Origin: Blepharisma stoltei ATCC 30299
Taxonomy: Eukaryota > Protista > Ciliophora
NCBI GenBank assembly: GCA_965603825.1
Contig: CBFDEM010000014.1
Location: 62,001 to 126,000, forward strand
Direction of reading: 5' to 3'
Length of the DNA: 64,000 bases
The notes below the pieces were generated by a model. That model was not told the DNA's origin. It did not search any database and saw only the letters and a program-made list of their open reading frames with translations. The translations under genes and the position numbers were made by a program. This document shows positions 9,771 to 64,000 of this stretch, piece after piece. Position 1 is the stretch's first letter, and each line of letters begins with the position of its first letter.

Positions 9771-12700
9771 ATGGACGAAGAGCGTTATCTAAAAGACGAA
9801 GAAGAATTAGGCTACCTTATAAGTAGGATCCGTGACTTATACAACCTCTATAAAGATTTTAAATTCAGATACAAAGAATTTACTCAATTTTCAGAAAAGG
9901 CGCCAGAACATATTTTCTTGAAAGATCCAGACATTCAAAGAAAATTTCGTGATGAATTTATTGAAAAATTATCTGAAATCCCTTCTCCGCCTCCTATACC
10001 TTTATATCCAGACACTCTTCTTTCAGAATTTTTATCATTAAAATCTGGCCCTCGTGCTGATAATTTTATCAAAATATTGAGTGAATTTTATTACAATCAA
10101 TCTACTTATATAAAGCACTACAAGCTGAAATTTCTATTAAACTGGGCACATCTATCACAATTTGTGCGAGTTGACCATCTAAACCAGCACGTAAACCAGA
10201 GAATAGTAAAATTAACTGATCTCCTAAAGCTTTATAATAAGCGTTATTCTTTATTAACAAGCGAAGATGAAGCAGCAATTACAGAAGCCATCGAAAGCCC
10301 TTCAATTTTTGACAGCTATATCAGAGACTACATAAATATAAAATCCAACCTCTTAAACACCCACAAAAGTATCGACAGATTTCTTCAGAGACTGAAATGG
10401 CTTTCAGTATCTCATAGGTCAGAAATATGAAAAAGGTCTAATGAAATTTTATATGAGCTTAAACAACGGTCTATAGAAAGAATGAAATTAATCACAGGAA
10501 GGGAGGACATCGGGGAGTATAAGCTTGTGGTAAATCTTATGACGAATATTAATTTGAGGAATTTAAGAAAACAAAGAGAAATCATGAAAAGGGCCAAAGC
10601 TATCCATTCAACTTTTGCTGAAGAACATTTGAACTTAAACGAGCAACTTCTGAATTCTCATGTTGATGAAATTGATGGCCCACCTGTCTTTATTTTAAGT
10701 AAAAAGCAGCTAGCAAAAATTCTGTATTCAATTCAAAAAGAATTCGCCTTAATTTCTAATATTGAAGAAGACAATGGGAGTTCTTTATTTTACCAAATAT
10801 CGAATTTATTTCCTATTATTTTTCAAAATCAATCAAAAAGACTTGACTGAATCCCAGCAGAAAAATTTGAAAAAGACCAGTTAGATATAAACAGACTTTC
10901 TAATGTAAACGCTTCAAAAGCATTCAGATCTGTTCGCAGAAATTCTCTATATGTCCCGATCTCTTATCAGACCTTAGGAAATAGGCCAGTAAGAACCATT
11001 TATATAAAAAATGCTGATTGGCCTAAAAATTCAAGAATAACCCCTGCAATCCCTGCCTGGCAGAAAAAGCAGTCAGCTCAGCTAAAAAGTTTCTTAAAAA
11101 TTGATAATTTGTTAAGCAGCTCTTTTTTGATATTAGAAGTGCAAGACCAATCAGTCGTCACCAAAATTGTTGAAGAGTTTTCTCACACCTATGTAGACCG
11201 TGCAAGTAAACGAGGAGTCTTGCTGAGTGAACTTGGGCTTTCTAATGAGGATTTACTAAAACGATATTTTGCATCCTTAATAAATGATGCTAATATTGAT
11301 ATAAGCAGCACTCAAGAGCCAGAAGAGCCATTAGACCTGCCAATTCACAATATAAAAAGCTTATTTTTATTGAGACTTTTGAAATCAAGGTTCCAAAAAC
11401 AGTCAATTTTAAATATTTTAAATGCCATGAAGTCCATTGAAAGAAGGATTTTTTTTGATATGCAAGATTTAATGCAGGGCCAAAACACAAAATTAATAGA
11501 AAATGTCAATAAATATGTAGAAGAAGAAAATATCACCCATTATTGGCCTGATAAATGTGCAGAATTATATGGGAGAAAAAACAACATTGAAACTTTAGAA
11601 GGAGAAATTTATGTCCAAGACGAGTTTGGGTATAATATTTTATATAAAGAAGCAGTAGACGATTTTAATGAGCTACTAGAAGAACTAAAAAAATTAGGGA
11701 GCTTTTATATTGATAAATTTGAACTGTGAAGCGAAGAACAAGGAGAGTGTTTTCCAGTTATAGATAGAGACTTAATGCTAGGAGAAATGCTTGATGAAGA
11801 GCTGAAATTCCAAGAAGAAAAATTAAAATTGATATTTTTATATAACGAATTATATGATCATGCCATAGACGCAGGAATGCAAGGGACCATTGCAAAGCAA
11901 ATTTTAAATTTAATTGCAATGAGGCCAAGATATTTTCTTAATGGGTCGTATTTCACACAAAGCTATTGGGCACACATAAACTCACTTCAGCAGCATTTTC
12001 AGACTATTAATATAATTTTAGAAAATTCAAGATCCGCACTTCATGTCCCAGAAGTTTTCGAATCTTCAGGGAATGCTAGAGAAATTGAGATTTTTGAAGA
12101 AATTTCTTGGATACACAAGGCATGGCCACTTCTCCAGCAATGCATTGATGAGCTTTCTTTAATCCACCAGATAGAAACGCCTTTATTTTCAAGTGCCCTT
12201 GAACAAGCGGTATGGGAATTTTCGCAGCATGACTGACGGTATTCTCAATTTTCAGGCCGTGGGCATTTTCCTGAAGAAATTTTGATTGACCGTGGAGAAC
12301 TTGTGACATCAATTATTTCTGAGCTTGAAAGAGAAGTCAAGGTTAAAAATTGGAGGATGCTGCCCAAATTAAGTTTATTAGCTGATGGTAGGAAAGGCCC
12401 TGTTGATAGTAATATACCAAGTCTTCAACAGTTATATGCGAATTCTTTAGAGATCTGAAAATTTCGATCAGTTTTAGAAAAGACCCTTGAGGAAAGAGCT
12501 ATTTTAGAAGAAATTTATATAGCACAATTCAAAAAAATGGGCAAAGAGATCACTGAAGCTCCTCCTGCAAATTGAGATGTTGGGTTTTACTTAACCTCAA
12601 GAGTCGACGAAGGCCCAGGCTCAAGGATAGACTTTTCTCTTTCCGCTTTTGAAATAGATCCAAGCTTAAGATCAAATTTGCATTTCGGGAACGTCCACGC

Positions 12701-15700
12701 TATAAAAACTTTATTTCTGACCTGTGGACTAGAAGAAATAAGAACAGTAGCTTTATATGAAATAATGAATAAGCATTTATTAACAATCGCTATACAAACA
12801 AATCAAGCTGCAATTGAAGACTCAGAAAAACAAATTTGTGATATTGAGCTTGCAAGAGATTTAGCTTATGTCCCAAAATTATCAAAAGTAAAGTGAAATA
12901 ATATGTTTGGAAGAAAAGGAGAAGGACTAATTCCTGATAAAATTGAAAGAGAAGTCAAAAGGCTCCAAATAAAAATGTTAAGTGAAGCAAGTATGTTTGG
13001 CTTTGATATTAAACATAAAAAACTGAACCACAGAGAAAATCTTGAAAATAATTATAAAAGAATTGCAGAAAAATATAAAACTATTTTTGAAGAAGAAAAT
13101 TTGCATCTTGTATTGAGATATACAAGATGCTTGTGTGTTCAGGCTTACTGCAATGAGGTGTTAAGAGAAGCATATCATGACTCAATTAAGCTGCAAGTCA
13201 TTAAGGTTTTAAGCGAATATTGTCTACTTTTGAAATTGGTACCAGAAGACTTGTACAATGCATTTGTAGAGGAAAATCCAAAACCAAACCAATTAATAGA
13301 TGAAGAAGGGAAAATTGTGAATATTTTATATATACCAACAATTGAAGATATTTTAGCATTACCAAGCTTTACAAATAATGAAAAATCAAGCTGGGCAGAT
13401 TGGGATCCTTATTTAATAGCAGAAACCCCAGAAATTTACCATAAAAAACTCAAAAATCTTTTATTGAAAAATTCGATTTCCCATGATTTCAACTATGGGT
13501 CATTAAAAATTTCTAATGACTGGCATTTTAATTCTTCAGTGAAAAATTATTTAGAATTATTGATCACTATGAGCAGGATTTTTGGAATTTTATTATTTTC
13601 AAACAGCATGGAGCTACCAGGAAAAGATATCACTAATATGGTAGATTTATTATTGTATAAAAATAAATATTGAAAAATAATTCAAGAAAATGAAGAAACA
13701 GACCCCAGAGCATTAGCAGTTTTTAGAATGCTAAAAGAAAGCAGTCCTCAGTTAGTTTTGTATAATATTTTTAAAAAAATCATAGATTTTCTTAAAGGAA
13801 TGCAGAGCGAAATGCAGACTTTAAATAAAATAGATCAATGCAAATACCTTATTTTTGAAGTAAAAAGAATTTTTCAATGCATGGCAATTTCTATATTTGA
13901 ATGCTGAAATTGATGCTTAGAAAATCATAATGAAAGTGATGGCAAAGAAGTATTAGAAAATATTTGTGAAAATTTCAGGCTAACACGTAACAATTTTATT
14001 CACGGGTTAAAAAACTCGATAAACGCTAAGTCATCAGAAAGCTTTCTAATAAATTTAGGCGAAAATTTAGTATTTTCTGATAACCAAAACTATCTAAGCC
14101 TAGGACTTGTAGCAAGTTCATCTGTGCTCAAATTATCGTCAACTTTTGTAGACTGCTCTATAGAATGCAGAAATTATTTTTTTAAAAAATTCATTATGAT
14201 AGAAAAAGACAGCAGAAAAATGATTTTTAATAAAAATAAATCTGACACAGAATCAGTGGCAACTCTTGAAGAGGAACTTGAAGCTTGGAAATTGAAATTA
14301 TCATGGCTTTCATATAAATTCGAAATCGATATCCCTTCTAGCTCTCAAGACTATTTGTCATTAATAAAGGAATATTATGACACAATAAAGACAAAGGCTT
14401 CTTTTCTTATCCAAAAACAAAAATCCCCAGAAAATTTGTTCTTGAAATTATTTTTTCAGATTTCCTTGTGTAAAGAGTCTATAAATCTACTTCAATCTCA
14501 ATTAATAAGCCTTATAGATACCACAGGCTTAGATATGGGCATAACAGGAAAATCTGAGTTTGCTTGTAATTTTGATAAAAATACCCATATAAAGGACCTC
14601 CGCCCTGGGGATATTCATAATTTTATAAATACAATAAGAAACAGAGGAACTGCAATAGAAGCCCCAACATCAGGTAAATCCTTTACTTTTGCTTTGTCTG
14701 ACTTAAATTATTTAACTAAAATGCTTGCTAGCCGCATAATAAAATACGCAGAAACTGAGGTAAGAATCAAAGAAGAAGCCAATCAAATAAAATCTCAGCT
14801 ATTTGATTTCCAGCTAAAAGCCTTATCCAAAGAAGAAAAATCGGTAAAAAAAAGTTTGGAATTATTTAAATCAAATTTTGAAGGGCTTTGCAATTCAAAT
14901 ATATCAACAAGAGGTAATAAATTGATTTATACATTAGATTCAGCATTTAGAGAATTAAATGAGATTAAGTCCAATATGAAGCATTTGTATAAGCAAACTG
15001 ATGAATTTATATATAAAGATTTTAAAGAAGAATTACAAGAAAAAGGTAGAAAAATTCATGATTTAAAAGAAAACCATAGAGACTATTATAACGAAATGGC
15101 TCAAACCTTAAAAACAAATTTGACTGATAAAAAAGAAGAAGCCCTATTAGAAGTCAAATCTGGAACCTCTGAATACAAAGCATTCGAGCTACAAAAATTT
15201 ATTCTCGATGATAAAAATGATACAGAAAATAAAGAAAAAACTGAACTAAGCCGTCTGCAAGACAATATCATAAAAATCCGTATCATGAATAAATGGATTT
15301 TACACAGAATAAAAGAACGCAAAGAAAAACAAATAAATGAGCTTAAAGAAACCCTCCAATCTAATCAATACTTATGGGAGCAAATAAATGAATCTGAACG
15401 ACGAGAAGCTTTATTAAAACAAGAGCTTTCTTTAACCCAACAAAATCTTGCCACAGGAGAAAAGCTAGCAGACTATTTGCAAGGACAAATAGAAGACATG
15501 AATAATCAAAGGCTAAGGCTACAGCAATTTAAAACCACAAAAGGAAGAAGAATAATTGAGCTAGAAGCCAAAGTGAAAAAACAAAATTCAGCAGATAGGG
15601 CCGAAAACCAAACTTTTTTACGTGGACTTTATATCCAAGACAAACTATTAAAAAAAAATTTTAATAATGAAGCTGAAGGTGCGTTGGAATATATAGAAAA

Positions 15701-16028
15701 ATCTCATGAATATTCAGCAAAAATAAAAAATTTAGAGGAAAAAATTAAAAGGGAAAGGCAATTGAAATTGGATGGGTTTAATGAGGTTGTTATGCTGAGA
15801 GATGATATGAATAAAATTGGAGGAAAAGATAGGGAAGCATTGTGGAAATATAGATATCAAGAATTGCTAGCGGAGTCTGAGAAATTAAAAGAACAAAATG
15901 CACAGCTGAATATTCATTTGGTTACTCATGGAGGAAATCAGGTTGAAGTTGTGGATTTAAATAGAACAGTTCAGAATTTGCCAAAAATTGAACCTAAAAA
16001 TAGGAGGTTGAATACTACTTTGATATAA
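9771..16028 (+). CDS. Large CCDC162/DUF4549-like coiled-coil protein (~2085 aa)
   Basis: Seven listed ORFs (9771, 10482, 11109, 11775, 12678, 12903, 14124) share one frame, broken only by TGA, and end TAA at 16028. Segments YVQDEFG..ILY..A..DF.EL.EEL..LGSFYIDK and IDR..ML...F.E.K..L...Y.ELY.HA.D...RPRY...YF resemble CCDC162 as I recall it. Confidence 0.85.
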
Positions 16029-16663: not shown

Positions 16664-17629
16664 ATGTTGAGAAACGGATTCTTAGTCTTGATCCTAGCCA
16701 ATTTAATTCTGGGTTTACGCACACATATAAGTCAAGAAGGCGCTGAACTTGAAGTGACATCAGAATCTGCAGAAATTGAAGTAACCAGTGAGCCTGTTTC
16801 TACTGAAGAAGTAGAAATTGGAATAATAATTGATGAGGAAGCTGGAACTGTTTGTTCTACCTGCATAACAATAGATGAATTTGGAGCATTAATCAGTGGG
16901 GAAGCTACTCCTGTAATATCAGAAATTTATGATATTGAAGATACAGAGCAGCCATCAGAAGAGGAGCCAAGCACTTCAGAACCTGAAGAAGCAATTCCAG
17001 AAGAACAAGAAGCTGAGGAAGAAGCGACTGAAGAGGAACCAAGCATGTCAGAACCAGAAGAACAAGGAGCTGAAGAAGAGCAGCCAAGTGAAGAAGAGCA
17101 GTCAAGTACTTCTGAATCAGAAGAAGTAGAGCCTGGTGAAGGAGAAACTATAAGTGGCGAAACCTCAGTCGCTGATAATGTGTATGAGACCTCAGACATA
17201 CCAACTGGAATCCCAGTCGAAAACTGTGTACGAGAAAATCTGGCAGCTATTTCTTGGGATGAAGGTGCCCACATAAGAGTTTATCAAGCTCATGATGGGA
17301 TTGTTCAAGAATGGTGTCAAGATGGATATGGATGGTATACTACTGATTTTTTTGCATATGGTAAAGCAGTATCAGCCATTGCATGGGGAGATGGAAATAT
17401 CAGAGTTTATGTAGGTGATGGTAAAAATATTGTGGAGTATTGCTATGGAAGTGGAAATGGCTGGTATATGGGTGAATTTGAAGTTGAAGGAGTTACTTCA
17501 TCTGTAACTGGCTGGGAAGATGGAGGGAATGTGATATTCAAGCTTTATGTTATAAACGCTGATGGAGGAATAGATGAATATTCTTATGAAAATGGCTGGG
17601 GAATACTTTCCGGTATGAGTTCAGAATAA
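16664..17629 (+). CDS. Secreted protein: signal peptide, Glu-rich region, three RSL/AAL-type fucose-lectin beta-propeller blades (paralogue 1)
   Basis: Hydrophobic N-terminus. Blades AAISW..HIRVY...EWC.DG.GWY, SAIAW..NIRVY...EYCY...GWY.GEF and SVTGW...FKLY...EY.Y.NGW match the Ralstonia RSL/BambL repeat pattern. Confidence 0.88.
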   Translation: MLRNGFLVLILANLILGLRTHISQEGAELEVTSESAEIEVTSEPVSTEEVEIGIIIDEEAGTVCSTCITIDEFGALISGEATPVISEIYDIEDTEQPSEEEPSTSEPEEAIPEEQEAEEEATEEEPSMSEPEEQGAEEEQPSEEEQSSTSESEEVEPGEGETISGETSVADNVYETSDIPTGIPVENCVRENLAAISWDEGAHIRVYQAHDGIVQEWCQDGYGWYTTDFFAYGKAVSAIAWGDGNIRVYVGDGKNIVEYCYGSGNGWYMGEFEVEGVTSSVTGWEDGGNVIFKLYVINADGGIDEYSYENGWGILSGMSSE

Positions 17630-18240
17630 ATTAAAAATTTTAATAATTATAATTAGGAAATGAAGAAAAAATGATTAAAAATTCAGCAGAAAGCTTTAGA
17701 CCTAGACAATGATAGTTTCCTTACAATTATAAAAGTTTTTTAATTTTAAACTTTTATTAGTTAAATCAAAAACTGATAAATTTACCAATCTCTGAAAATT
17801 ATATAATTTTAGATTTTAAAAATTATCTCTTTAATAATAACTGCAGTTTTTCTTAAAATATAGATAGCGAATAAAAACTTTTTTTTTGATTTACTATCTT
17901 TCATAATTAGCAAAATAATTGATATCTTAATTTAGTGAAAAAATTTAATAAAACTTTAATTAGTAAAAAATTGCTAAAACCTTTAATGCTTAATAAATAG
18001 CTTTTGTCTTTATTTATTATATTAGACGATTTTTTATATTAAAAAATTTCTAACTATTGTATAAAGCTTTTAATTAATAGAATTATTTATCTTCATTCCA
18101 AACAAAAAGTGACAATTCCCGCTAAATCAATCTCTTTCAAAAAATTGATATCCACCAGCAAAGCAAATTATAAAATAAATCTATTTATAATAATTTATAA
18201 AAACTCTCTCAAATTGATACAATAAAATGTCCAATTATAT

Positions 18241-19089
18241 ATGTTAAAAAACGGATTTCTGTTTTTAGTCCTAGCTAATATTATCCTCGGTTTACGCACA
18301 AAAATCACCCAGACTGCTCCTGAGCTCGAAGAAAGCTCAGAATCCGCTGAAATTGAAGTTTCAAGCGACTCTTATAGTACAGACACAGTAGAAATTGGTG
18401 TAATAATTGACGAAGAAGCTGGAACTGTTTGCACAAATTGCATTACTATAGACGAATTTGAAGCTTTAATAAGCGGAGAAGCAATAGCTGACATTAATCA
18501 AATATATGACACTGAAGAAACAGAACAGCCATCAGAAGAGGAGACAGAGCCAGAAGAAGAAAGCACTTCTGAATCAGAAGAAGTAGTGCCTGGTGAAGAA
18601 GAAACCATAAGTGGATTACCCTCTGTCGCTGATAATGTGTATGCGACCTCAGACGTACCAACTGGAATCCCAGTCGAAAATTGTTTAAAAGAGACTTTAG
18701 CTGCTGTTTCTTGGACAAATGATATTACTCATTTGAGAGTTTATCATGCTCATGATGGGATAATCGAAGAATGGTGCGAAGATGGATATGGATGGTTTTC
18801 AACAGGATATTTTACTATTGGAAAGACAGTCTCAGCAATAGCATGGGGTGATACTAATATTAGAGTTTATGTAGGTGATGGTAAAAATATTGTGGAGTAC
18901 TGCTATTCAGGAGGAAATGGCTGGTATAAAGGGGCTTTTGAAGTTGAAGGAGTTACTTCATCTGTAACTGGCTGGGAAGATGAAGGAAATTTGATATTCA
19001 AGCTTTATGTTGTAAACGCTGAAGGAGGGATAGAAGAATATACTTATGAAAACGGCTGGGGAACACTTTTCGATATGAGTTCACAATAA
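18241..19089 (+). CDS. Secreted three-blade fucose-lectin-like protein (paralogue 2, shorter acidic linker)
   Basis: Collinear paralogue of 16664..17629, 39 aa shorter, with most of the difference in the EEQPSEEE repeat region. Confidence 0.88.
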   Translation: MLKNGFLFLVLANIILGLRTKITQTAPELEESSESAEIEVSSDSYSTDTVEIGVIIDEEAGTVCTNCITIDEFEALISGEAIADINQIYDTEETEQPSEEETEPEEESTSESEEVVPGEEETISGLPSVADNVYATSDVPTGIPVENCLKETLAAVSWTNDITHLRVYHAHDGIIEEWCEDGYGWFSTGYFTIGKTVSAIAWGDTNIRVYVGDGKNIVEYCYSGGNGWYKGAFEVEGVTSSVTGWEDEGNLIFKLYVVNAEGGIEEYTYENGWGTLFDMSSQ

Positions 19090-26530: not shown

Positions 26531-27712
26531 TTAGACACCTTGGTTAGGAGGAGCCCCTTCTCTTGAGAAAAAGTGCTTAAGCCTATCATAAAGCTCTTGC
26601 AGTCTAGTATCAACTCTTCCTAATTTTTCCCAAAATTTGTCAAACGTATTTTTTAATCCTTCTTCATAATTATCGTGGGTGAATTTTTTAGTTAAATCGT
26701 CTTTGATTGTTTCTAAAGCAATATCTCTGAGGCTTGCTATAGGGTATTTTGTAGGAGCTTCAGAAATAAATTGATGCTTAAGAAGATCATCGACTGAAGG
26801 GCGCTCTTCTGGGATTAATTTTATGATTCCTTGAATAAAGCTTATAGCATTTTCAGAAAAATGGGATGGAAATGAATAGTTTAGCTCTAGAGCTTTGGTG
26901 AAGATTAAGTAATCAGAACCGCCTTGGAATGGGGGATAGCCAGCTAACATATAATAAGCCATACAGCCTATGCTCCACATATCACTTTTAAAGGAGGAAT
27001 CTTTATTTTTTATGCATTCTGGAGCCATAAAATGAGGTGTTCCGACGAAATTTTCGAATTTTTTTTTTCGCATTGAATTTCCAGGGACCTCGACTTCTGG
27101 ATGTTCTAAATCTTTTGCGGTGCCGAAATCAATTATTTTGATTTTTCCTTCATTTGTGATTAAAACATTTTCTGTCTTGATATCTCTGTGGACGATCCCC
27201 CTTGCATGGACTTCTTTCATAGTTTCTAAAAATTGTCTTAAAAAATACCTCATTTGGATTTCTGGCATCCCAAAAATTTTGCATCTATCCCATATTTCTC
27301 CACCTTCAACTCTTTCGTATAGAAAATAAAGATCCATTGAGTCTTTAAAGCATTCATATAGATGAACGACCCCTTCTAAGTCTTTTAATCTATTCATGAC
27401 GTGCTTTTCCATCAAAATGTCAGCTTGCTTTCTCAATTGTGTGACTTTTTGTTTGTTTACTTTTTTTAGTGCATATTGCTTTCCTGTTCTTCTTTCTTCT
27501 ACATGAATAATCTCAGAAAAATTGCCAATTCCAAGTATTTCTAAAAATTGGAAATCATCAGCTGACCTAGGTGGGTGATATCCTTCACAGGTCCATTTAT
27601 GAGTTTTTCAATGTTTTCCTTGGCATTTTTGATCGCAGTAATAAAACTTATGGCATAAAGAACACCTATTAGGAACATTTTCTTTTCCACATGTCGCGCA
27701 GATATTTTCCAT
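26531..27712 (-). CDS. MYND zinc finger + PDK1-like AGC Ser/Thr kinase (~393 aa)
   Basis: N-terminus CATC..RCSLC..YYCDQKCQGKH-W(TGA)-KTHKWTC. Kinase motifs GIGNFSEI, HRDIKTEN, DFGTAK, FVGTPHFMAPE and PPFQGGSDYLIF. Confidence 0.92.
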
Positions 27713-30419: not shown

Positions 30420-31348
30420 GGATTTATTTATTATAAAAATTGGAAAATTTAGTGGATTTTGAAATTTAATAAAAATTGGTTTATAATTGCGGGTGTTTTT
30501 TAAAAATTGATTTAAATGAAATATTTATTTAAGATTTTGGTGATAATTGCATTCTTAAAAGAATTATTTCTGTTACATTTTTAAAATTAAAATTTGATAA
30601 TTGTACACGTGAAGTTTAATTGTTAGATATAAAGCTGAAATTGTGTATTAATTGCAATTAAAGTATAAAAGAATTAGTGCAAAATTGCGGATAAGATTAA
30701 ACTATGAGTAATTCTTGCAATCTATAAAATCAGAGCAATTCAAGATATAGATAAACTTTTATTTGCTAATTTTTTATCCATTACTCAAAATACATAAGAA
30801 TATTTTCAATTCCCTAGTGTTTATCCAGACTCACAGCATGCACTAAGAGTCTTCTTGTAATCTAGCTTATATTTTTAACTAGCTTAAGAATAAAAAAATT
30901 ATAAATCAAAAACTTCATATAATTGCTTTGACTTCCAATGAATCTCCGACTAAATATCTATAATGATAACATACTATTTTCATTAAATCAAACTTAATTT
31001 ATTGAAAATCATGCATATTTATAATTTTAAGCTTAGCTAATTCAATATAAAGATATTTAAAATAAAACTCTTTTGGCTACTTTTTGTTTTAAAATCTTTG
31101 TTGCTAATTTTCACCTCAATTGTATTTTTGCTGCCAATATATTTTATTACTTCAAGTCTTTTTAATTATCTCAGCTTGCTACAGACTTATTGATTCATGA
31201 TATACACATCATGTATTTCAAAAATTAGACACTCGAGGAAACGTTAATTAAACTATTCCTGCATGAACTGAATTATTAAACAAAATTCTGATATCAAAAA
31301 AAAAATTTTAAAAAAAACATTATAAAATCAATAAATAGAAACATTTAT

Positions 31349-32149
31349 ATGATGCTTTTCAAAAGTGAGCCAATCTCAAAAGAATTGAAATACTCAAAAA
31401 GTGTAAATAGCATGAAAACTACAACCTCAATCAAAATTGATGCTAAACCAAGAAACTCATTAAAATTGCCAGAAAGAAAAAAATCAGTCGACATTACAGC
31501 ATGCTCTATAAGTATTTTAGACGAAAATTGTACATTTACTGAAATAAAATTATCTCCCCTTGGATTTTCAATCCCTTCTAAAAATTTTCCAGTTATTCCA
31601 ATAAATCCCTTTCAAAAAAATGGAGCTCCCAAACAAAGAAATTCTTATAGTTTTAGCAAAAATGCTAGTTTTGATAATTTGAATATAAAAGAGCAGAGAA
31701 GATCTTTGTCAGAAAAATGAAACCAAATTAATGTTTCCCAAATGTCAGAAAGCTTTGAGAAACCATTAAATAAAAGCGTTAAAGGCTGGATTACAATTAA
31801 TAATGCACCCGCCATACCAAATCAGCCATTTAAGTCAAAATGTAAAAAAATCAACCCTTTAGTATTTTTAAAGCCTCACAATAATTTAAGAAAATCCCAA
31901 GGACTTACATCTGATAAAATTGAGATCATTGAAAAGACTTTCAAGCAAAAAGAAATTTTCTTAAAAAAAATAGAAAATTTAGTAGTAGATGCGAATTTAA
32001 AGGAAAAAGGAATTATTAAGAAAACTAAACGAAGAACCAAAAAAGCATTGAAAGCAGCTAATGTGTATGAGTTTGCTGTCTCTTTAGATAAATTTGCTAA
32101 AGAAGGGATTAAAGAATACCACGTTCCAGCATATGAGTATTGTAAGTAG
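31349..32149 (+). CDS. Lys/Ser-rich hypothetical protein (gene A, copy 1; 266 aa)
   Basis: ORFs 31349..31720 and 31742..32149 are in frame across one TGA; ends TAG. Confidence 0.75.
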
Positions 32150-32261
32150 ATTGCAATTAATAATTCTAAACAGACACCAGTTTAATAAATAGATAATCAT
32201 TATATTTTTTAAGCCTTTTCAATAGATTATATATTTTTAGCATAATTTTTGGACCATAAAA

Positions 32262-33302
32262 ATGATGCATTTTATATTCTTTTACAGCTTCTTCTTTGGC
32301 TGTAACTGGTTTTTATGCCTCTGCTATAAATTAGTATACAATCAGTGGGCTGGACTCTGCGAAATATTCATTTGAATATTTATAAATACTGGAATTTTTT
32401 ATTACCTTGCTCCTGCAGAAAAAACTATTGATGAAATTGGAATTTCGCATATGGATATTGCTTTAACCTCCGAACAGCCTACATTTATAGGCGATTTGGC
32501 TGAAAATAATTGAAAATTGTCCTTAGAATCTTTGAATTTGAATAATCTAATACCTATCATATTGCTCCTCTGAGTCTTTATCTGGCAATCAACTAATCCA
32601 AGTCAAAAAATACTCTTCTCGCACTTTCTTATATTTTTAGATACAAGCTTCGCGAATTATTACATAGGTAGCAATACCTGGGAAATTAATTTATCAAAAA
32701 TTATTTTTTCAATTTTTATGATGATCTTCACATTTAATTATTTTCTCAGAAAATATGATGCAAGTGTCGAAAAAAATGAAAATCAAATTATTTTAGGCTT
32801 CATTTTCAATACAGCTTGGCTCTGTATTACGATATTTACTCGTTCTAATCATTTTTTGAGTATTGAAACATATGAATGGTTTATGCCTGCAACAATGAAG
32901 ATGTTTGAAGAAGTCTTGGTGAACTTTTTTTCTTTAATTTTTGTACTGTGTTTGATGTGAATTACACAATCAATACTTGATGAATTAGAAATCAATTTAT
33001 ATATATCAGAATCTAGAGTATTTTGACGAAGAGAACTTTCAAATATATTGATGGACGATTTGTGAAACATTTTTTGACTAATTTTTATCAGTCTCATTAT
33101 GTTTAGCATTCACTGGGGTCTAGAAAAAATTTATTTTAGCCCATTGATTCTTACTGAAGGGTTTATTATGATATTTTCTTGAATTTTATCGTATTTTTGA
33201 TATGATGGAGATGTTGACAATCCGAATAAATTATACAGTAATATAGCAGCAATTTATTTGGATATTTGTGCATTTAGATGGATTTTATCTTTCACCGCTT
33301 AG
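32262..33302 (+). CDS. Multi-pass membrane protein (gene B, copy 1; 346 aa)
   Basis: ATG 32262 to TAG 33302 is open when TGA=Trp; hydrophobic; same length as copy 2. Confidence 0.8.
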
Positions 33303-33514
33303 AATTAATTAAATATATCCATTTTTTATTATAAGCTTACTAGTTTGTATTATTATGCTTGGATACTTTATTTTACTAGCAGGATATGATTTCTCAATTA
33401 TAAAAATGGTTTATTAATTTTAAATATAAGAAAAATCATGGATTTATTGAATCTTAATAATATTTAAAATAATTTATTTTATTTAATTTTAATATATAGT
33501 CTCGAATTCAAACA

Positions 33515-33735
33515 TTGCGGCTGATAAAGAAGTATCCCTTGGTGCAGCTGAAAGATCCCTTTTCAACTTGTCTCCCATTTACCCATGATGAAAAATACTC
33601 CCCCATGATTTAACTTTGTTGATCAGCTATTATGTCCCACCTTAAAACCTAAGAATTCACACACATGACACCTCGCTCTCTTCCTTAATGTCTCTAGTTC
33701 ATAATTTCAGACCGATTGATCACGCTGTTTTATAC
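33515..33735 (-). mobile_element. Possible decayed non-LTR reverse-transcriptase fragment at the duplication junction
   Basis: Unique, less AT-rich insert. Broken-frame peptides SV.NYELETLRKRA and GSFSCTKG..TSLSAAMF recall RT motifs (AYDSV...L.KR; GxxQGxxLSPxxF). Confidence 0.28.
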
Positions 33736-33771
33736 ATTAATAATATAAAATCAATAAATAGAAACGTTTAT

Positions 33772-34599
33772 ATGATGCTTTTCAAAAGTGAGCCATCTCA
33801 AAAGAATTGAAATACTCAAAAAGTGTAAATAGCATAAAAACTACAGCCTCAATCAAAATTGATGCTAAACCAAGAAACTCATTAAAATTGCCAGAAAGAA
33901 AAAAATCAGTTGACATTACAGCATGCTCTATAAGTATTTTAGACGAAAATTGTACATTTACTGAAATAAAATTATCTCCCCTTGGATTTTCAATCCCTTC
34001 TAAAAATTTTCCAGTTATTCCAATAAATCCCTTTCAAAAAAATGGAGCTCCCAAACAAAGAAATTCTTATAGTTTTAGCAAAAATGCTAGTTTTGATAAT
34101 TTGAATATAAAAGAGCAGCGACGATCTTTTAGAAAAATGAAACCAAATTAATGTTTCTCAAATGTCAGAAAGCTTTGAGACACCATCAAATAAAAGCGTC
34201 ATAGGCTGGATTACGATTAATAATGCACCCGCCTTACCAAATCAGCCATTTAAGTCAAGATGTAAAAAAATCAACCCTTTAGTATTTTTAAAACTGCACA
34301 ATAATTTAAGAAAATCCCAAGGACTTACATCTGATAAAATTGAGATTATTGAAAAAACTTTTAAGCAAAAAGAAATTTTCTTAAAAATAATAGAAAATTT
34401 AGTAGTATGCGAATTTAAAGGAAAAAGGAATTATTAGGAAAAGTAAACGAAGAGCTAAAGAATCATTAAGAAAAGTAAACGAAGAGCTAAAAAAGCATTG
34501 AAAGCAGAGAATGTGTATGAGTTTGCTGTTTCTTTAGACATATTTGCTAAAGAAGGGATTAAAGAATGCCACGTTCCAACATACGAGCATTGTAAGTAA
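33772..34599 (+). pseudogene. Frameshifted copy of gene A
   Basis: Relative to copy 1: a 1-bp deletion at ~33795, 2-bp deletions at ~34129 and ~34407, and a 32-bp tandem duplication at 34433-34496. Confidence 0.75.
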
Positions 34600-34743
34600 A
34601 ATGCTTTTAAATAATTCTAAATGACATTAGTTTAATATTTCTATTTAATATATAGGCTATCATTATATATTTTAGGCTTATTCAATAAATATATTCAAAC
34701 AAATTTTTTACTAGATAATGATTGAATTATTTATTTAATAAAA

Positions 34744-35784
34744 ATGTGGTATGTTATATGCTTTTACAGCTTTTTCTTTGGCTGTAATGGGCTTTTATGC
34801 CTCTGCTATAAATTCGTTCATAGCCAATGGGTTGGACTCTGCGAAATATTCATTTGAATATTTATAAATATTGGAATTTTTTATTACTTTGCTCCTGAAG
34901 AAAATGCTTTTGATGAAATTAGAAAATCTTATATGGATATTGCTTTAACCTTCGAACAGCCTACATTTATAGGAAATTTAAATGAAAATAATTGGAAATT
35001 TTCCTTAGAATCTTTGAATTTTAACAATCTAATAACCATCATATTATTCCTATTAGTCTTCATCAGGCAATCAATTGATCCAAGTCAAAAAATACTCATC
35101 TCACATTTTCTTATATTTTTAGACACAAGCTTCGCGAATTATTACATAGACAGCAATACCTGGGAAATTAATTTATCAAAAATTATTTTCTCAATTTTTA
35201 TGATGGTCTTCACATATATTTATTTTCTCACAAATAATGGTATAAGTGTCAAAAATAATGAAAATAAAATTATTATCTGTTTCATTCTCAATACAGCTTG
35301 GCTCATTTTTACGGTATTTACTCATTCTTATCGATTTTTAAGTACTGAAGCATATGAATGACTTATACCTGCAGCAAAGAAGATTTTGGAAGAAATCATG
35401 ATGAACTTTGTTTCTTTGCCTTTTCTACTTTGTTTTGCATGTATTACAAAATCAATACTTGATGCATTAGAAATGAATTCATATATACCGGTACCTAAAG
35501 TATTTTGGCCAAAAAAATTTTTACGTATATTGATGGACGATATAGGAAGAATTCTTGGACTAGTTTTTGTTTGTTTCCTTATGCTTGGCATTCACTGAGG
35601 TCTAGAAATAATTTATTTTTGTCCAAAAATCCTTACTGAAGGGTTTATAATGATATTTTCTGAGATTTTATCGTATTTTTTGTATAATAGAAATAGGCCC
35701 ATTTCGGGGGAATTAGACAATAATTTAGTAGCATTTTATTTGGAAATTAGTGCATTTAGATGGATTTTGTCTTTTGTATCTTAA
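34744..35784 (+). CDS. Multi-pass membrane protein (gene B, copy 2; 346 aa)
   Basis: ATG 34744 to TAA 35784 is open with TGA=Trp and aligns without indels to copy 1. Confidence 0.8.
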
Positions 35785-41924: not shown

Positions 41925-43454
41925 ATGGACGTTCAAAGAACATTTAACTACAACTTAGGTGTCTTAGGACACATAGATTCAGGCAAAACAAGCTTAGTCC
42001 GTGCTCTAAGCACCATTTTATCTACAGCCGCCCTCGACAAATCCCCTCAATCTCAAGAACGTGGAATTACCTTAGACTTAGGATTTTCTGCATTTAGAAT
42101 AGAAATGCCAAGTCACCTAAGCAGAGACTACACAGACCTCCAAATCACCCTTGTAGACTGTCCAGGCCACGCCAGCTTAATCCGGACCATTATAGCTGGA
42201 GCTTCTATTATCGACAAAATGCTATTAGTAATAGACGCCACCAAAGGTATCCAAACCCAAACTGCTGAGTGCATCGTTATAGGAGAACTTCTATTAAAAA
42301 GCAGCCTTATTGTCGCTTTAAATAAAGTTGACCTTGTAGACCAGGACAAGCTAAATAATGTGGAAAAAAGAATTAATGCAATGCTTTCTATGACAAAATT
42401 CAATAATAAATTCGGAATTTTAAAAGTAGCTGCTGCACCTAGAGAAGGAGATCCTATAGGTATAAGAGAGCTTATTGAAGCTATTTCAGGGTCTATTGAT
42501 GAGCTGCCGAGTAGAATAAATAATGAGCCACTTTATTATGAAATTGATCATTGTTTTCCAATAAAAGGACAAGGAACTGTGATGACTGGGACTATTTTGC
42601 ATGGAAATATGAGGGTAGGGGACACTTTGGAAATTATTCCTTTGGGGATTCAAAAAAAAATAAAATCAATGGAGTGTTTTCATCAGCCTGTAAATGAGGC
42701 GAAAAAAGGGGATAGAGTTGGAGTTTGCGTGACAGGGTTTGATTCTAAATTGCTAGAAAGAGGGGTTGCCTCTACCCCTAATACCTTGAGAGTTATACAG
42801 AAATCAATTATCCGCGTACAAATAATCCCGCATTATAAATTCCCGATAAAATCTAAAGCGAAATTCCATATCACGTGTGGGAATGAAACAGTCATGGGAA
42901 GCTGCGTATTTTTTTCAAGCCCGAATTTAAAAAATAGCCCAAATGAGGAGGATTTAGAAAGGTTTAGCCCAGATATGCTTTATCATTATGAAGATGAAGT
43001 TACTAAGTCTAATAAAAAGTATTGGGCTTTATTAACGCTGGAGAGTCCTATTTGTACTCTTGCTGACAGCTTAGTTATTGGTGCAAAACTTGATATTGAC
43101 GTAAATTCAAAAGCTTGTAGAATCGCATTTTCTGGGATCACAGAAGTTTTGGATCCTGAAATTTCTTGTGATTTTATCAAAGTTTCTAAACCAAAGAAAA
43201 AAGTAGGCCAAGTTGATAGAATTCAAGACCCTTATACTGCAATTGGTGTTGGAATGTTTAATAAAGAAACTGATATATCAAAATTTGTAGGACTTCAGGT
43301 AAAAGTTAATGGAAAAATTGGGGTAATTGTAAGCTCTTTTGGAAAAAGTGGGAAATTTAAGATAAATTTCCCTGAAGGAGATGCGGTGACTGGAGAAGTT
43401 GTATTAGAGTTCAATCGTTTGTTATGGGACCCACGAAATCAGATGGTTCAATAA
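41925..43454 (+). CDS. EEFSEC: Selenocysteine-specific translation elongation factor (eukaryotic SelB)
   Basis: NLGVLGHIDSGKTSLVRALST..STAALDK.PQSQERGITLDLGFS, TLVDCPGHASLIRTII.GA.IID, GIQTQTAEC, DHCFPIKGQGTVMTGT, KFHIT.G.ETV, CRIAFSG and FGKSGKFKI. Confidence 0.95.
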   Translation: MDVQRTFNYNLGVLGHIDSGKTSLVRALSTILSTAALDKSPQSQERGITLDLGFSAFRIEMPSHLSRDYTDLQITLVDCPGHASLIRTIIAGASIIDKMLLVIDATKGIQTQTAECIVIGELLLKSSLIVALNKVDLVDQDKLNNVEKRINAMLSMTKFNNKFGILKVAAAPREGDPIGIRELIEAISGSIDELPSRINNEPLYYEIDHCFPIKGQGTVMTGTILHGNMRVGDTLEIIPLGIQKKIKSMECFHQPVNEAKKGDRVGVCVTGFDSKLLERGVASTPNTLRVIQKSIIRVQIIPHYKFPIKSKAKFHITCGNETVMGSCVFFSSPNLKNSPNEEDLERFSPDMLYHYEDEVTKSNKKYWALLTLESPICTLADSLVIGAKLDIDVNSKACRIAFSGITEVLDPEISCDFIKVSKPKKKVGQVDRIQDPYTAIGVGMFNKETDISKFVGLQVKVNGKIGVIVSSFGKSGKFKINFPEGDAVTGEVVLEFNRLLWDPRNQMVQ

Positions 43455-48952: not shown

Positions 48953-50626
48953 TTACTCATACAAAGTGATAGTCTCTTCCTGAATATTCTTGGCTGACCC
49001 CGACTTCTTCAAAAGTGCTCCAAATATTATATTCTGTTTTGACCTCTGCATCAGCACCGGTCCCATATCTTCATCACTTTCAGCTAATTTTTTTAGATTT
49101 TTCCACGCATTTTTGATATACTGCGTTTCCTCAATCATTTCACTACACAAAAATCTGGTAATATCAATAGCCAAAGTTGTCGTATATACAAGTTTGCATT
49201 TTTCTATTATATCTTCTTCATCATTAATTTTATTTTCAGGGCTGGCTGGTTCATCTGTGCTATCAGTTGCTGCCCTTTGTTTTGGGGCTTGAATTGTATA
49301 AATATCATATTTGCTTTCGCTGCATTTTACTCTTTTATGGGTTGGGCGTGGTGGAGCTTTAGGGTGTTCAATAGAGCCATATGTCAAAATTGCGTGTCCT
49401 GGCTCAAGAGTGATGGTCCTTATTAGTGATAAATCAACGACTTCATTTCTGTCTGATACAAAACCCATCAGAATTATGGACTGTTTTTCGTTGATTTTTT
49501 CGACTATTTCATAGTCAGACACAAAAGTGTCTCATTTTTTCCTGAGGTGGGGTTCAGTAATAATGTCAATTATGGTGTCGAGGGAAGCGTTAATCTCCAT
49601 TTCACATTTGGCTTCGATAAAATTCCCTGATTTTTTGTAGCTGAGCTCAAGATTGCCTGGGTAGCCATCTGTGTTCAGCTTTTTCCAGGAGGAAGAGGTG
49701 TTATCGCTGGCAGAGCGTGGGGAAATTTGTGGCTGGAAGGTATTTTCGTTTCAGTTTTCAAAGGCTATGATTGCTTTTCTGTCGTCATTTAGAATGTAGT
49801 TTAATAAATGACTGTCTCCAAGCTGCTCTTTGATTTTCCCACAAATTTGCCAGGCAAGTTCTGCGGAATCTCCCTGGAAGGCTCGATTTAAATGAAGGTT
49901 TAATTTCATATCTCGAAGCACATCCATGCTGATTTTCATCATTGCGTCAATAATAGTTTGATAATACCTGAAGGTAGTTGAGCTTGTGAGTTTATATAGA
50001 ATGTCCAATGCTTTTGATCCTATTACTTCAACCCCGCACAGAGGCATAAGTTTCATCAGTAAAATTGTAGCGACTGGCATCGAAATTTCTTGTTTTTGGT
50101 TAAAAAACTCCCTTTCGAATTTTTCTATGGCTTTAAGTCTTTTATGTTCTGACTGGTCAACTCTTTTAATAAAATTAGCAACACACAACTCAGTTGGACT
50201 TAGCTTGCAAGTTGCTGATTTCCCACGATCTAAAAATAGCAACCGGAAGTTTTCTGGAATTTCAAGGAATTCACCCAAACTTTGGAGGGTTTGTGGGAAA
50301 TTTAAGGAAGAAGAAATTCATTCCTCCAGAACCCTTTTTCGGGATTCTATACATAAATGATGCTTTTTCCCGAGAAGTTTCTTCTCAGGGAACTTTGGAA
50401 GCTGGGGCCAATACTCATCGGAATTTGGGTGGGTCCTCAGAGCGTTTCTGAGTTGATGAAATTGACTGTAGCGCTTAAAAATTCTGTACTTGTAGGTGTG
50501 AAATGTTATAAGGACTTCGTATTCCTGAATGAATTTTACTGTGAAATTGCTTTTAAATACTTGATTAGTGCATCTTAATGCGGTTCTAGGAATGGTAACA
50601 TTAATACAACTATCTAAAAGTTCCAT
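48953..50626 (-). CDS. PX-domain + START/SRPBCC lipid-binding protein (~557 aa)
   Basis: PX motifs RIFKRYSQF..L, LPKFPEKK and ESRK..LE. START-like W.KL, RKK-W(TGA)-D, R..VDL and SIEHPKAPP...RV. Three ORFs share a frame across TGA codons. Confidence 0.85.
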
Positions 50627-58500: not shown

Positions 58501-59871
58501 ATGAAAAAGAAGACAATTATTCTCATCGGCATATATACTGCATATTTCGCCAATGCAATAGTCTTTACTTTGGTGATCCCATTTGCAAGCAAAATGGTCA
58601 TTAAATTTGAAATAGCTGATGACAGATCATCAACAGGCACCTGAGTTGGCCTTATGACCTTCTCTTTGATGTTTGGTAGAACAATTACATCAGCCTGCTG
58701 AGGATCAATTTGTGACAGATGGGGAAGAAAGCCTGTAATGCTTATTGGAATTGCCTCAATTACGATTTTTTCGTTACTTTTTGGCTTTTCGCCTAATTTC
58801 TGATGGGCACTCACATCAAGGTTTCTTTTAGGAGTTTTTACACCTTTAGCAATAGTAACAAAGACCTTGATTTCCGAAATTTGCCCAGACGAGGAACAGC
58901 CTTCAGCCATGGCTTTACAATCTATGCTATGACAAATAGGGCTGGTTGCTGGAAACGTGCTTGGAGGTGTATTAGAGGACCCTGAAAGTTCTGGACTTAT
59001 TAAAAGTGGAATTTTCGCTGACTTTCCTTTTTTATTGCCAAATTGTGTAGCTGCTTTAATAGCATTTCTGTCGTTTTGGCTTGTATACCCGAATTTAGAA
59101 GAAACCCTTCAAAAAACGGAATTAATTGGAGGGAGCTCTATTTCAAATACAAGGACGTCAAAACAGATCATTACAGACCCGGTAGTCTGTAAGATTTTGT
59201 CTGCTTACACAATTTGAGCTAATAACTCAACCGCAATGAACGAGCTTATGGTTTTGTACCTATGAACTGACATTAAATATGGAGGATTTGAGCTAAATCC
59301 GAAAGAAATTGGCCTATTTTTAGGCGCTTCTACCATTTTGATAGCAATTTTTCAAAAAAATATAGCTTCATTTATGATAAAAAAGTATGGACTTGTGAGG
59401 ACTGCAAAAATTACGACGTTTTTGGCTATCCCGATACTTTTATTAGCACCTTTGGCAAGCTTGCTTAATAGAGATTTAGTATTCAGATGAGTAGTTTTGG
59501 CACTGATTCAGATGACATGGATTACTGTGAATATTATTTCCTTTACAGCTATAAGCTGTATGTCTAATAATTCAGTTATTTCACAAGAAAGAGGAAGAAT
59601 GAATGGACTGTTTATGACGTCTGCAAGTTTAGCTAAGTCTATAGCACCTTTGCTGATTGGATTTACTTTTACAAGCACTGTTAAGGATGGGCTATTTTTT
59701 CCTTTGAATTATTCGTTTTCGTTTTATTTGATAGCTGCTATAGAAGTGGTAATGTGGAATATTTGCAAATGGTTGCCAGTATCGTTGAATCAGTCGAAAG
59801 AAAAGCAAGGGTTTCAGCTGATGAAACATCCAGAAGATGACCAGACCGTTATAACGAATATTAATAAATAG
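58501..59871 (+). CDS. MFS transporter, ZIFL/DHA1-like (~456 aa)
   Basis: ATG 58501 is open to TAG 59871 with seven TGA(Trp) codons; motif A W(TGA)GSICDRWGRKPV, RFLLG, FPFLLPN and ERGRMNG. Confidence 0.9.
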
Positions 59872-61508: not shown

Positions 61509-64000
61509 ATGAGTTATTCTGAAATTTGTGACAAATTCGACTCAATTGCAGCTAATCTCAAAAAAGGAACACAAGTGGTATCAGCAATTCACGTTTTCTT
61601 TAAAGGTTTTAAGAAAAACCTTGACTCTTTTAACCAGCAGCTGCAGAAACTATCAGAAGGTCTTTTTGCAGATCTCCCAAAAGAAGGAAACACAGACACT
61701 TTGTCAGGGGCTTTAAATGAGCTGACCACTTATATGAAGCTGCATATACAGACTCAGGTTCAGTTGTCGAAAAACGTGCAGATTGATATAATTGAGCCTT
61801 TAGAGCTGTTTTTAGAACATTTCACCACTACAAATTCAAGCTTGGTAAGCAGAGGGTCAATTGCGGCAAAGGACCTTGCGAAATCAACTGAAAAAGTACA
61901 AAAAACCAAAAAAAGTTATATTGAGTCTGCAAAATTAGCAGAGAGGTCAGAGCAAATGATTGCTGAAGAAGACACTAGAGAAAAGCAAGACAAAGCTTTA
62001 AGGCTAGCTCTTTATAATAGAATGCTTGCTAATAAAGCTTCAGAAAATTATACAAAAGCCCATGAAGAAATGAACACTTCTTGGGAATTTTTTGATGCAG
62101 AAATGCCAGAGGTGATGGAATTTATTCAACAAAATGAAGAAAGCCGCATTCATTTTTTGAAATATACGTTTGATAAATATATCAGGCATTATAAATCTTA
62201 TTTTACAGTAATTGATGAGGCTTTAGATGATTTCAGCGCAGTTTCAAGTAAAATTAATAGTTCAATTGACGTCAAAATTTTTGTGGAAAATTTAAAAACG
62301 GAGCCACAAAAACGTGAAGAGATGGTGTCATATGAGCGCTGAAAAGAAATCCAGAAAGAAAAAAGCAAGCAAGAAGAAACCCAAAAAGAGCCAGAAATAA
62401 CGACAGAACTCCTAATAAAAATCCTTAATTTCTTGACAAATAATGACAGTAGCCCAGAAGATTGAATTGAGGTGGCATCAAAAGATTCTTCTAAGCCAGA
62501 AGACCTAGACCCTGTCTATTTTGGAAGAATTTCTAATGTTTTCCACACCCCAGAAGGTCGAACACTATTTTGTGATTCTCTAGAAAGCTTAAAACATAAA
62601 AGCTCACTAACTCCGACAAAAATTTTACAGTTGGCAGCAATAATTACGTCTCTTTTAACTGTTATTATGATGGAGGAAGACCACGACACAATTGTTTTCT
62701 GTAAACTTGTTGTACTTTCACACATATTTTATACAGAAGATGAACAAGGGAAACGAGTTTATTTATCTGAGTATATATCGTCTCATAATATATGGCATGA
62801 TAAAGAGAGGTGGGTCGAAGCCATTGAGTGTGGTATTTCTGCAAAAATTTCAGCTGACAAAGATAATTTGCAAAAATATCATTCTTTAAAGAAAAAAGGG
62901 AATAATTTATTTGGAATTTTAAAAGGAATAAAAAATAAGTTTCCACAGAAAATTGCAGAAAATGAGCATATAATAAAATCTGCTGCAGTAATGATTATTA
63001 GCCAGTTCAGCTTCCACATGATTCATTTAGGAATTCCTTTTGAGACTGCTAATGCAGTCATTTTAAAATGCTGCCAGAAAGTAAATCTTGATACTGATAG
63101 AACATGTGTTTTATTAGCTGAGCTGCAAGCGAATCAAAGGATGAATTTGCAAGTTGAAGATGAATGAAAAAGATCATTAAGAAACCGTGAAAAAGAAAGG
63201 GAAATCTGGAACGGTCTCCTACCTATTGGGCTAGCCTTAGATTATTTAAATCACTCTGAAAGCTTTATATTACTACAAGTATGCAAAAAATGAAATAAAA
63301 AATTCTATGTCCCAATCCTAAAAAAGTGACTGTCAGAAGCTGAAGAATCTGCCCAAAAAATTCGAAGCAAAGCCTGAATTGAGCTATTGAGAGACCATAT
63401 GCCACCCATTGAATATCAAGCATTTGTTCAAAGAATTACGTCAGAGCCAAGCATGATTAGCGAATTAGAAGAAATTATCAACATGGATGTATTGAGAAGT
63501 TATAAAGATTCTCTTGTCAACCCAAATTCCCTTAAAAATCTGCTAAAAACATATGCATTTTATAACCCAGAAGTAGGGTATTGCCAAGGGATGAACTATA
63601 TAGCAGGTACTTTACTTATTCAGCTTCAAGATGAAGAAATGAGCTTTAAATGTTTTGCAGCACTTATTAAGAGGTTTAACATGACAAATATTTTTATAGA
63701 TGATTTACCAAAACTAAGGCAATTTTTCTATATGTTAGATCGATTAACAGGACTTTTATTACCAGAAGTCTACGAATTTTTCATGGAAGCTGGGATCACT
63801 TCAGCCCATTTCAGCTCTCCTTGGTTTATTACATTATACGCCAACATTTTGCAGCACAAATCACACATTTTAATCAAGCTTTGGGACTTGTTTTTCCAAA
63901 AAGGCTGGAAAATCATTTTTAAAGCTGCAATAGCCATTTTAAGCAGAATGTCCAGGGAATTAATAGGAACTCGGTACGAAAACGTTATGTCTGTGCTGAC
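61509..64000 (+). CDS. F-BAR + helical SBF2-like region + F-box-like motif + TBC Rab-GAP protein, 3'-truncated by the window
   Basis: F-BAR features (CDKFD.I, IIEPL..F, IQQNEESRI.FLK). TBC features (RSKA-W, INMDVLRSY, L.TYA.YNPEVGYCQGMNYIAG, PWFITLY, LWDLFF.KGWKIIFK). The frame is open across TGA codons. Confidence 0.88.

Follow-up and report, generated by a model that had tools for sequence, protein, structure and literature searches.

UGA very probably has two meanings in the ciliate Blepharisma stoltei: tryptophan (Trp) in ordinary genes, and selenocysteine (Sec) in a few genes with a SECIS element just past the stop codon. A first-pass annotation had proposed such a double meaning from the 64,000-nucleotide stretch analysed here (the window). 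The genome contains a tRNA-Sec, SECIS elements, Sec-type genes, and genes in which UGA reads as Trp. Every tested part of the Sec pathway except PSTK was located in the genome (41.5 Mb in 64 contigs), one of whose encoded proteins matches an NCBI Blepharisma stoltei entry at 100% identity.

An intact eEFSec gene

The gene at window positions 41925-43454 very likely encodes the working eEFSec of B. stoltei, putatively supporting Sec insertion. Its ORF runs from ATG to TAA without interruption, with no TGA and two TGG codons. Pfam recognizes GTP_EFTU, D2, euk_SelB_III (E 1.3e-27), and eEFSec_4th (E 2.1e-20); the models for domains 3 and 4 (PF21208 and PF21131) score 97 and 73 bits, each with a cut-off of 27. 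The top PDB match is human eEFSec (E 1.7e-132), about 95 orders of magnitude ahead of EF-Tu (5.7e-37). Every named protein among the best 120 homologues is an eEFSec, and the rest are unnamed proteins with the same domains. A quick tree, built without an EF-Tu outgroup, nests the protein in a 23-protein clade (SH-aLRT 100). The original reading of an intact eEFSec gene is thereby upheld, and the protein groups with eEFSec rather than outside it. In the copy-number search, the next genome matches are GTPases about 30% identical.

Assignment to bacterial SelB was rejected. The TIGR00475 score of 227.5 bits falls short of the cut-off (242.25 bits), and the match ends at residue 316; bacterial SelB also needs a winged-helix SECIS-binding domain 4, a combination that the gene does not show.

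The P-loop, switch 1, switch 2, and guanine-binding motifs of domain 1 are all intact in the motif columns of the alignment. Four residues define the Sec pocket of human eEFSec: Phe53, Asp229, His230, and Arg285 (PMC5059743). Phe54 corresponds to the first of these, and the counterparts of the others are given in Table 1. The resemblance to human eEFSec (PDB 5IZK, 7ZJW; PMC5059743) thus extends over the four-domain layout, the GTPase motifs, and the pocket residues, and also over the partners: SBP2, SECIS, and a 9/4 tRNA-Sec. The B. stoltei protein differs in its length of 509 aa, in its shorter domain 4 (equally short in close relatives), and in having Glu, as in EF-Tu, in the column of human Gln271. 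The rival at UGA would differ as well, being mainly tRNA-Trp rather than eRF1.

Table 1. Features of the window and of other genome loci (entries without a contig or locus label are window positions)
Feature	Position	Strand	Basis or remark
eEFSec gene, 509 aa, intronless	41925..43454	+	single copy in Blepharisma stoltei genome
eEFSec domain 1 (GTPase)	41952..42488	+	PF00009 residues 10-188
eEFSec Asp208-His209 = human Asp229-His230, Sec pocket	42546..42551	+	alignment; pocket per PMC5059743
eEFSec Glu250 (GAG), human Gln271 column	42672..42674	+	alignment with 119 homologues
eEFSec Arg264 = human Arg285, Sec pocket, conserved	42714..42716	+	alignment
eEFSec domain 3, eukaryotic SelB type	42807..43136	+	PF21208 residues 295-404
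eEFSec domain 4 (eEFSec RIFT), short form	43176..43379	+	profile positions 3-71 of 119 covered
2085-aa ORF, unbroken only when its 10 TGA count as sense	9771..16028	+	ORF reading
MYND-finger kinase	26531..27712	-	TGA directly follows position 31 of the MYND profile
Membrane-protein paralogue A, 9 TGA	32262..33302	+	internal control for UGA = Trp
Membrane-protein paralogue B, 3 TGA	34744..35784	+	paralogue alignment
PX-domain gene, 3 TGA, TGA/TGG swaps vs sister species	48953..50626	-	syntenic comparison
MFS transporter, 7 TGA	58501..59871	+	ORF reading
tRNA-Sec, anticodon TCA (UCA), 9/4 fold	G000:C30:34444-34529		75.6 bits vs cut-off 47; one copy
PUB-domain selenoprotein gene	L073:309-878 (G000:C54)	-	SECIS + penultimate TGA
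49-codon ORF, penultimate UGA + SECIS	L059:856-1005 (G000:C41, about 102050-102200)	+	ORF reading
Decayed tandem copy of 49-aa gene	L059:1340-1553; SECIS G000:C41:102697-102749		35-bit SECIS, 32-nt gap kept
Penultimate-UGA gene end, motif + GUGA core	G000:C12:362067-362106	-	pattern match, gene end only
Penultimate-UGA gene end, motif + GUGA core	C25:53958-53997	+	pattern match, gene end only

UGA as tryptophan

The first-pass annotation took dozens of in-frame TGA codons in neighbouring genes for Trp, and several comparisons bear this out. Thirty hand-picked ORFs of the window contain 51 TGA and 131 TGG codons, and all end in TAA or TAG; six further TGA lie in an ORF that runs past the window end. 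The residue facing TGA in paralogue alignments is Trp in 18 of 30 cases (some TGA sites enter in more than one pair), and any other residue appears at most twice. Membrane-protein paralogues A and B show four TGA/TGG swaps and one shared TGA among 11 TGA sites. The syntenic locus of a sister species, which retains eEFSec, has such swaps in the kinase, PX-domain, and 44424-45638 genes. In the MYND-finger kinase, TGA occupies what we take to be the conserved Trp of the family; a PP1 gene elsewhere in the genome has TGA at two Trp positions, presumably conserved also.

UGA as Trp is already published for Blepharisma, with a genome-wide count of 44,087 TGA vs 78,535 TGG. The proposed decoder is a B. 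stoltei tRNA-Trp(CCA) with a 4-bp anticodon stem (bioRxiv 2023.10.09.561518). Two approximate tRNA-Trp patterns run on the genome matched no tRNA.

Two arrangements in the window may be recorded. A two-gene block stands in tandem duplicate at 31280-35784, where the copy of the first gene, near 33762-34430, looks frameshifted. At 16664-19089, two tandem secreted proteins combine an acidic region with Trp-rich repeats; their Trp codons are TGG in 14 of 14 cases.

Selenocysteine machinery and selenoprotein genes

The genome search proposed with the original annotation found tRNA-Sec, SBP2, and SepSecS. SBP2 lies on contig C53 (E 1.2e-20 to human SBP2), and SepSecS on C40 (423 bits), with two 15-nt introns and one Trp-TGA. 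The search for SPS2 and PSTK succeeded in part: a Cys-type selenophosphate synthetase (SPS) is encoded on C13 (214 bits), and PSTK was not found with TIGR03575, which yielded only a KTI12 gene, rejected as a candidate, and an unrelated match; a divergent or intron-split gene could escape such a search. The tRNA-Sec(UCA) was figured earlier (bioRxiv 2023.10.09.561518). That study concerns the same genome and the same two decoders, tRNA-Sec(UCA) and 4-bp-stem tRNA-Trp(CCA), but does not list selenoprotein genes, SECIS elements, SBP2, or eEFSec.

Seven genes were read, each with exactly one TGA, located at the Sec site, and a GUGA-core SECIS: GPx; TrxR; a Sep15-like protein; two SelW-like proteins; a PUB protein; and a 49-aa protein. 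The SECIS core lies 13-27 nt past the stop codon in all seven, and Sec sites are found up to 379 nt upstream of the element. The products measure 537 aa (TrxR), 189 aa (PUB), 167 aa (GPx), 98 aa (Sep15-like), and 86 aa (SelW). Family searches produced the GPx, TrxR, and Sep15-like genes, and the SECIS model with pattern scans led to the 49-aa, SelW-like (CGS-U), and PUB genes. The GPx TGA aligns with the catalytic Cys of six paralogues. TrxR terminates in GC-TGA-G-stop (GC-U-G), the same as in eight relatives; SECIS elements of the same kind occur in TrxR relatives. The 49-codon ORF has a myristoylation-type start and no Pfam match; its decayed tandem copy has no ATG and carries an in-frame TAA. 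A near-identical transcript from a relative, and both SelW paralogues, keep UGA with SECIS.

The literature lists PUB among the selenoprotein families of algae. Its ten relatives are all truncated at one common column; DNA was read for one of them and shows TGA with a SECIS. The public B. stoltei PUB entry has a start 24 aa longer, and Trp at the Sec site. As this one entry checked shows Trp in place of Sec, the selenoproteome is likely hidden in databases.

Rfam RF00031 missed every SECIS here, so a custom model was used. In a seven-sequence SECIS alignment, pairing reaches 89.5% and 12 of 15 pairs are doubly changed; none of 500 shuffles was as good, and the alignment also beats slid controls, its structure having been set from those same seven sequences, which favours the pairing score. 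The TrxR, 49-aa, SelW, and PUB elements were recovered at 24-37 bits by a model trained without them. The gene list is a lower bound, because the model scans (150 candidates scored) passed over known elements and at least two escaped the patterns. Thirteen weak SECIS candidates were rejected, either on the model or for a position antisense to a gene, and the sole Rfam SECIS_1 match in the genome, inside a PP1 gene, was set aside as chance. The window contains no tRNA and no SECIS-model match below E 0.3, in keeping with the earlier remark that it holds no recognizable selenoprotein.

Among the SECIS-bearing genes that had been suggested for a search, GPx and TrxR have UGA and SECIS, and the SelT-like gene is a Cys form; MsrA and SPS were rejected as selenoproteins for the same reason. 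Most GPx paralogues are Cys forms, and only one TrxR-type gene is present among eight TrxR family matches. MsrA, on C39, provides a negative control within a redox active site: TGA at a Trp beside the catalytic Cys, and no SECIS. Rdx-family matches with TGA were rejected as Sec genes, the TGA codons being at Trp sites. The SelK family search of the genome gave no match and was uninformative.

Several long proteins (L027-L030, L032-L036) have an N-terminal CxxC Rdx-like domain with TGA for Trp. One GPx paralogue (L017/L018, G000:C37:534387-534703) lies in two frames, as a pseudogene or a gene with a tiny intron.

Probable basis for choosing selenocysteine over tryptophan

A SECIS accompanies every Sec-site UGA and none of the Trp-site control UGAs. 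These observations suggest a model in which UGA would be read by default as Trp by the near-cognate tRNA-Trp(CCA) with its 4-bp anticodon stem. In a few mRNAs, the GUGA-core SECIS just past the stop would bind SBP2, which would license eEFSec-GTP-Sec-tRNA(UCA) to win the A site. As tRNA-Sec(UCA) appears to be the only cytosolic tRNA cognate to UGA, the SECIS-tethered cognate presumably beats the mismatched decoder, aided by C or G at +4. Failure at an internal Sec site would then result in a full-length, Trp-substituted enzyme rather than truncation, and a degree of leakage to Trp would be expected at Sec sites. Near a stop codon, residual eRF1 may also compete. The first-pass annotation held that Sec insertion competes with a sense decoder rather than with termination. 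The first half stands, the weak near-cognate tRNA-Trp(CCA) being the competitor; the second yields at penultimate UGA codons, where residual eRF1 activity has been proposed (bioRxiv 2023.10.09.561518).

The base after Trp-UGA is A in 55% of 108 codons. After the nine Sec-type UGAs, A at +4 is avoided, and GG or CG comes next in all nine; the five Arg codons in this position are all CGY, though CGN accounts for 25% of Arg use. In yeast, UGA-A favours tRNA-Trp (PMC4748822). The +4 context rule is weakened by the conserved Gly or Arg after Sec, by paralogy, and by CGA in a standard-code-type relative.

The penultimate UGA codons may call for something more. Five gene ends, those of TrxR, PUB, and the 49-aa gene along with two on contigs C12 and C25, share three elements: UGA-SGY-UAG; the motif CARAAGAUUG, 8 nt behind the UGA; and a gap of 32-33 nt to the SECIS core. 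A tentative addition to the model is that SECIS is insufficient at a penultimate UGA, where this lineage-specific cassette might pause the ribosome or repel eRF1 and tRNA-Trp. The motif is exact in all five ends; among 139 gene ends, none but TrxR and PUB has fewer than two mismatches. The C12 and C25 ends also agreed with the motif at positions outside the pattern asked for. However, the four internal-Sec genes contain no copy, and the motif could alternatively act as a signal for 3'-end processing or for stability. Comparison with standard-code-type relatives cuts both ways: neither six TrxR relatives nor the PUB relative has the motif, whereas UGA-SECIS gaps of 31-34 nt occur in such relatives too. 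A TrxR of 78% identity carries a variant of the motif with three mismatches. In support of the cassette, Trp-UGA in window genes is never closer than 34 codons to a stop; against it, an exact copy of the motif also occurs, probably by chance, in a coding region at window position 62455. A short UGA-SECIS distance is published for Condylostoma (PMC4967479).

A stronger claim, that Blepharisma evolved, together with UGA as Trp, a sequence-specific signal choosing Sec over both Trp and termination, seems to us somewhat unlikely; in that reading, the EF-Tu-like Glu250 of eEFSec might be a matching adaptation. If true, the motif would be a cis-rule that settles which of two amino acids a single codon receives, of which no description was found. 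Our literature search, largely without subscription journals, found no publication on the 10-nt motif or on a B. stoltei selenoprotein list.

The copy in the coding region (62455-62464) accompanies an out-of-frame TGA-NNN-TAG with no SECIS core behind it, and is probably fortuitous. In the standard-code-type TrxR relatives L049, L052, L053, and L054, a GC-rich hairpin sits just past the TrxR stop, about 6 nt from the Sec codon, where Blepharisma has its motif; this hairpin resembles the Sec redefinition element. A hairpin after the Sec codon was rejected as a general rule, being present in 6 of 9 TrxRs and absent in GPx.

Selection on codon use could in principle achieve the same sorting: any UGA in a SECIS-bearing mRNA would receive Sec, and Trp-UGA would be removed from such mRNAs. 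Whether Sec genes avoid Trp-UGA was among the checks originally suggested. They do: the seven genes write each of their 13 Trp residues as TGG, even 5 codons ahead of the SelW Sec and 3 codons behind it (p about 0.017, given a TGA share of 28% in the window). But the avoidance is not special to them, since TGA makes up just 3 of the 36 codons for Trp in twenty conserved housekeeping genes, mostly redox enzymes (Fisher p 0.39). A special avoidance rule was therefore rejected. Blastocrithidia SelTryp, moreover, carries both kinds of UGA in one gene (PMC12153298), unlike the seven B. stoltei genes, with one UGA each, and Euplotes TRs carry both kinds for Cys and Sec (PMC3737529). On balance this explanation is improbable, and SECIS-directed choice between Trp and Sec is preferred.

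Glu250 of eEFSec

Residue 250 is Glu in B. stoltei and Gln in 119 of 119 other homologues, among them a sister protein of 80% identity; in EF-Tu this column is Glu. Because a separately assembled contig of the same organism shows no difference there, Glu250 is not an assembly error. The pocket residues tested in PMC5059743 do not include this column. The Gln-to-Glu change could weaken eEFSec.

It is nevertheless very improbable that the Sec system is decaying, with eEFSec a weakened relic and UGAs at former Sec sites by now translated mostly as Trp: Glu250 in a column otherwise always Gln, the missing PSTK (TIGR03575 search), the many Cys-type paralogues, the decayed gene copy that still has its SECIS, and the Trp annotated at the PUB protein's UGA would fit such a history, but all tested pocket and GTPase residues are intact, no second TrxR-type gene exists among the eight family matches, SECIS stems are preserved by compensatory changes, and UGA with SECIS is kept in both SelW paralogues and the relative's near-identical transcript. 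The first-pass annotation had itself considered a relic eEFSec in a genome devoid of tRNA-Sec, SECIS elements, and selenoproteins; tRNA-Sec, SECIS elements, and Sec-type genes are present.

Comparison with other dual-use codes

Double use of UGA for Trp and Sec is stated in Swart 2016 (PMC4967479), Bachvaroff 2019 (PMC6394959), and PMC12153298. Published examples of the principle are Condylostoma, Parduczia, Amoebophrya, and Blastocrithidia, so the situation in B. stoltei is not a new one. What remains of interest is the 10-nt motif, the +4 context rule, and Glu250.

Every Trp/Sec case found in the literature rests on sequence. Blepharisma lends itself to a clean test: UGA never serves as a stop, cultures can be grown, and there are one eEFSec, one tRNA-Sec, and few targets. 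The Sec/Trp ratio would be measurable at named sites, and changes to the +4 base, to the gap, or to the motif could be made singly.

Condylostoma magnum and Parduczia (PMC4967479) are ciliates in which UGA likewise means Trp and Sec, with a tRNA-Sec(UCA) and a TrxR Sec codon unusually near its SECIS; there, UGA is also a stop, whereas Blepharisma genes end in UAA or UAG only. Blastocrithidia (PMC12153298) and Amoebophrya sp. (PMC6394959) share UGA as Trp, Sec machinery, selenoprotein genes, and the lack of a cytosolic tRNA-Trp(UCA); unlike Blepharisma, they have reassigned all three stops.

Euplotes crassus (Turanov 2009, as described in PMC3737529) has a UGA that is never a stop, encodes two amino acids, and is tied in its choice to SECIS, much as in B. 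stoltei. The second amino acid there is Cys rather than Trp, and the dual meaning was demonstrated by 75Se, whereas that of B. stoltei is deduced from sequence. In the same account, Euplotes TR mRNAs contain seven UGAs with Sec limited to the last 20 codons; Blepharisma Sec extends to the 379-nt distance given above.
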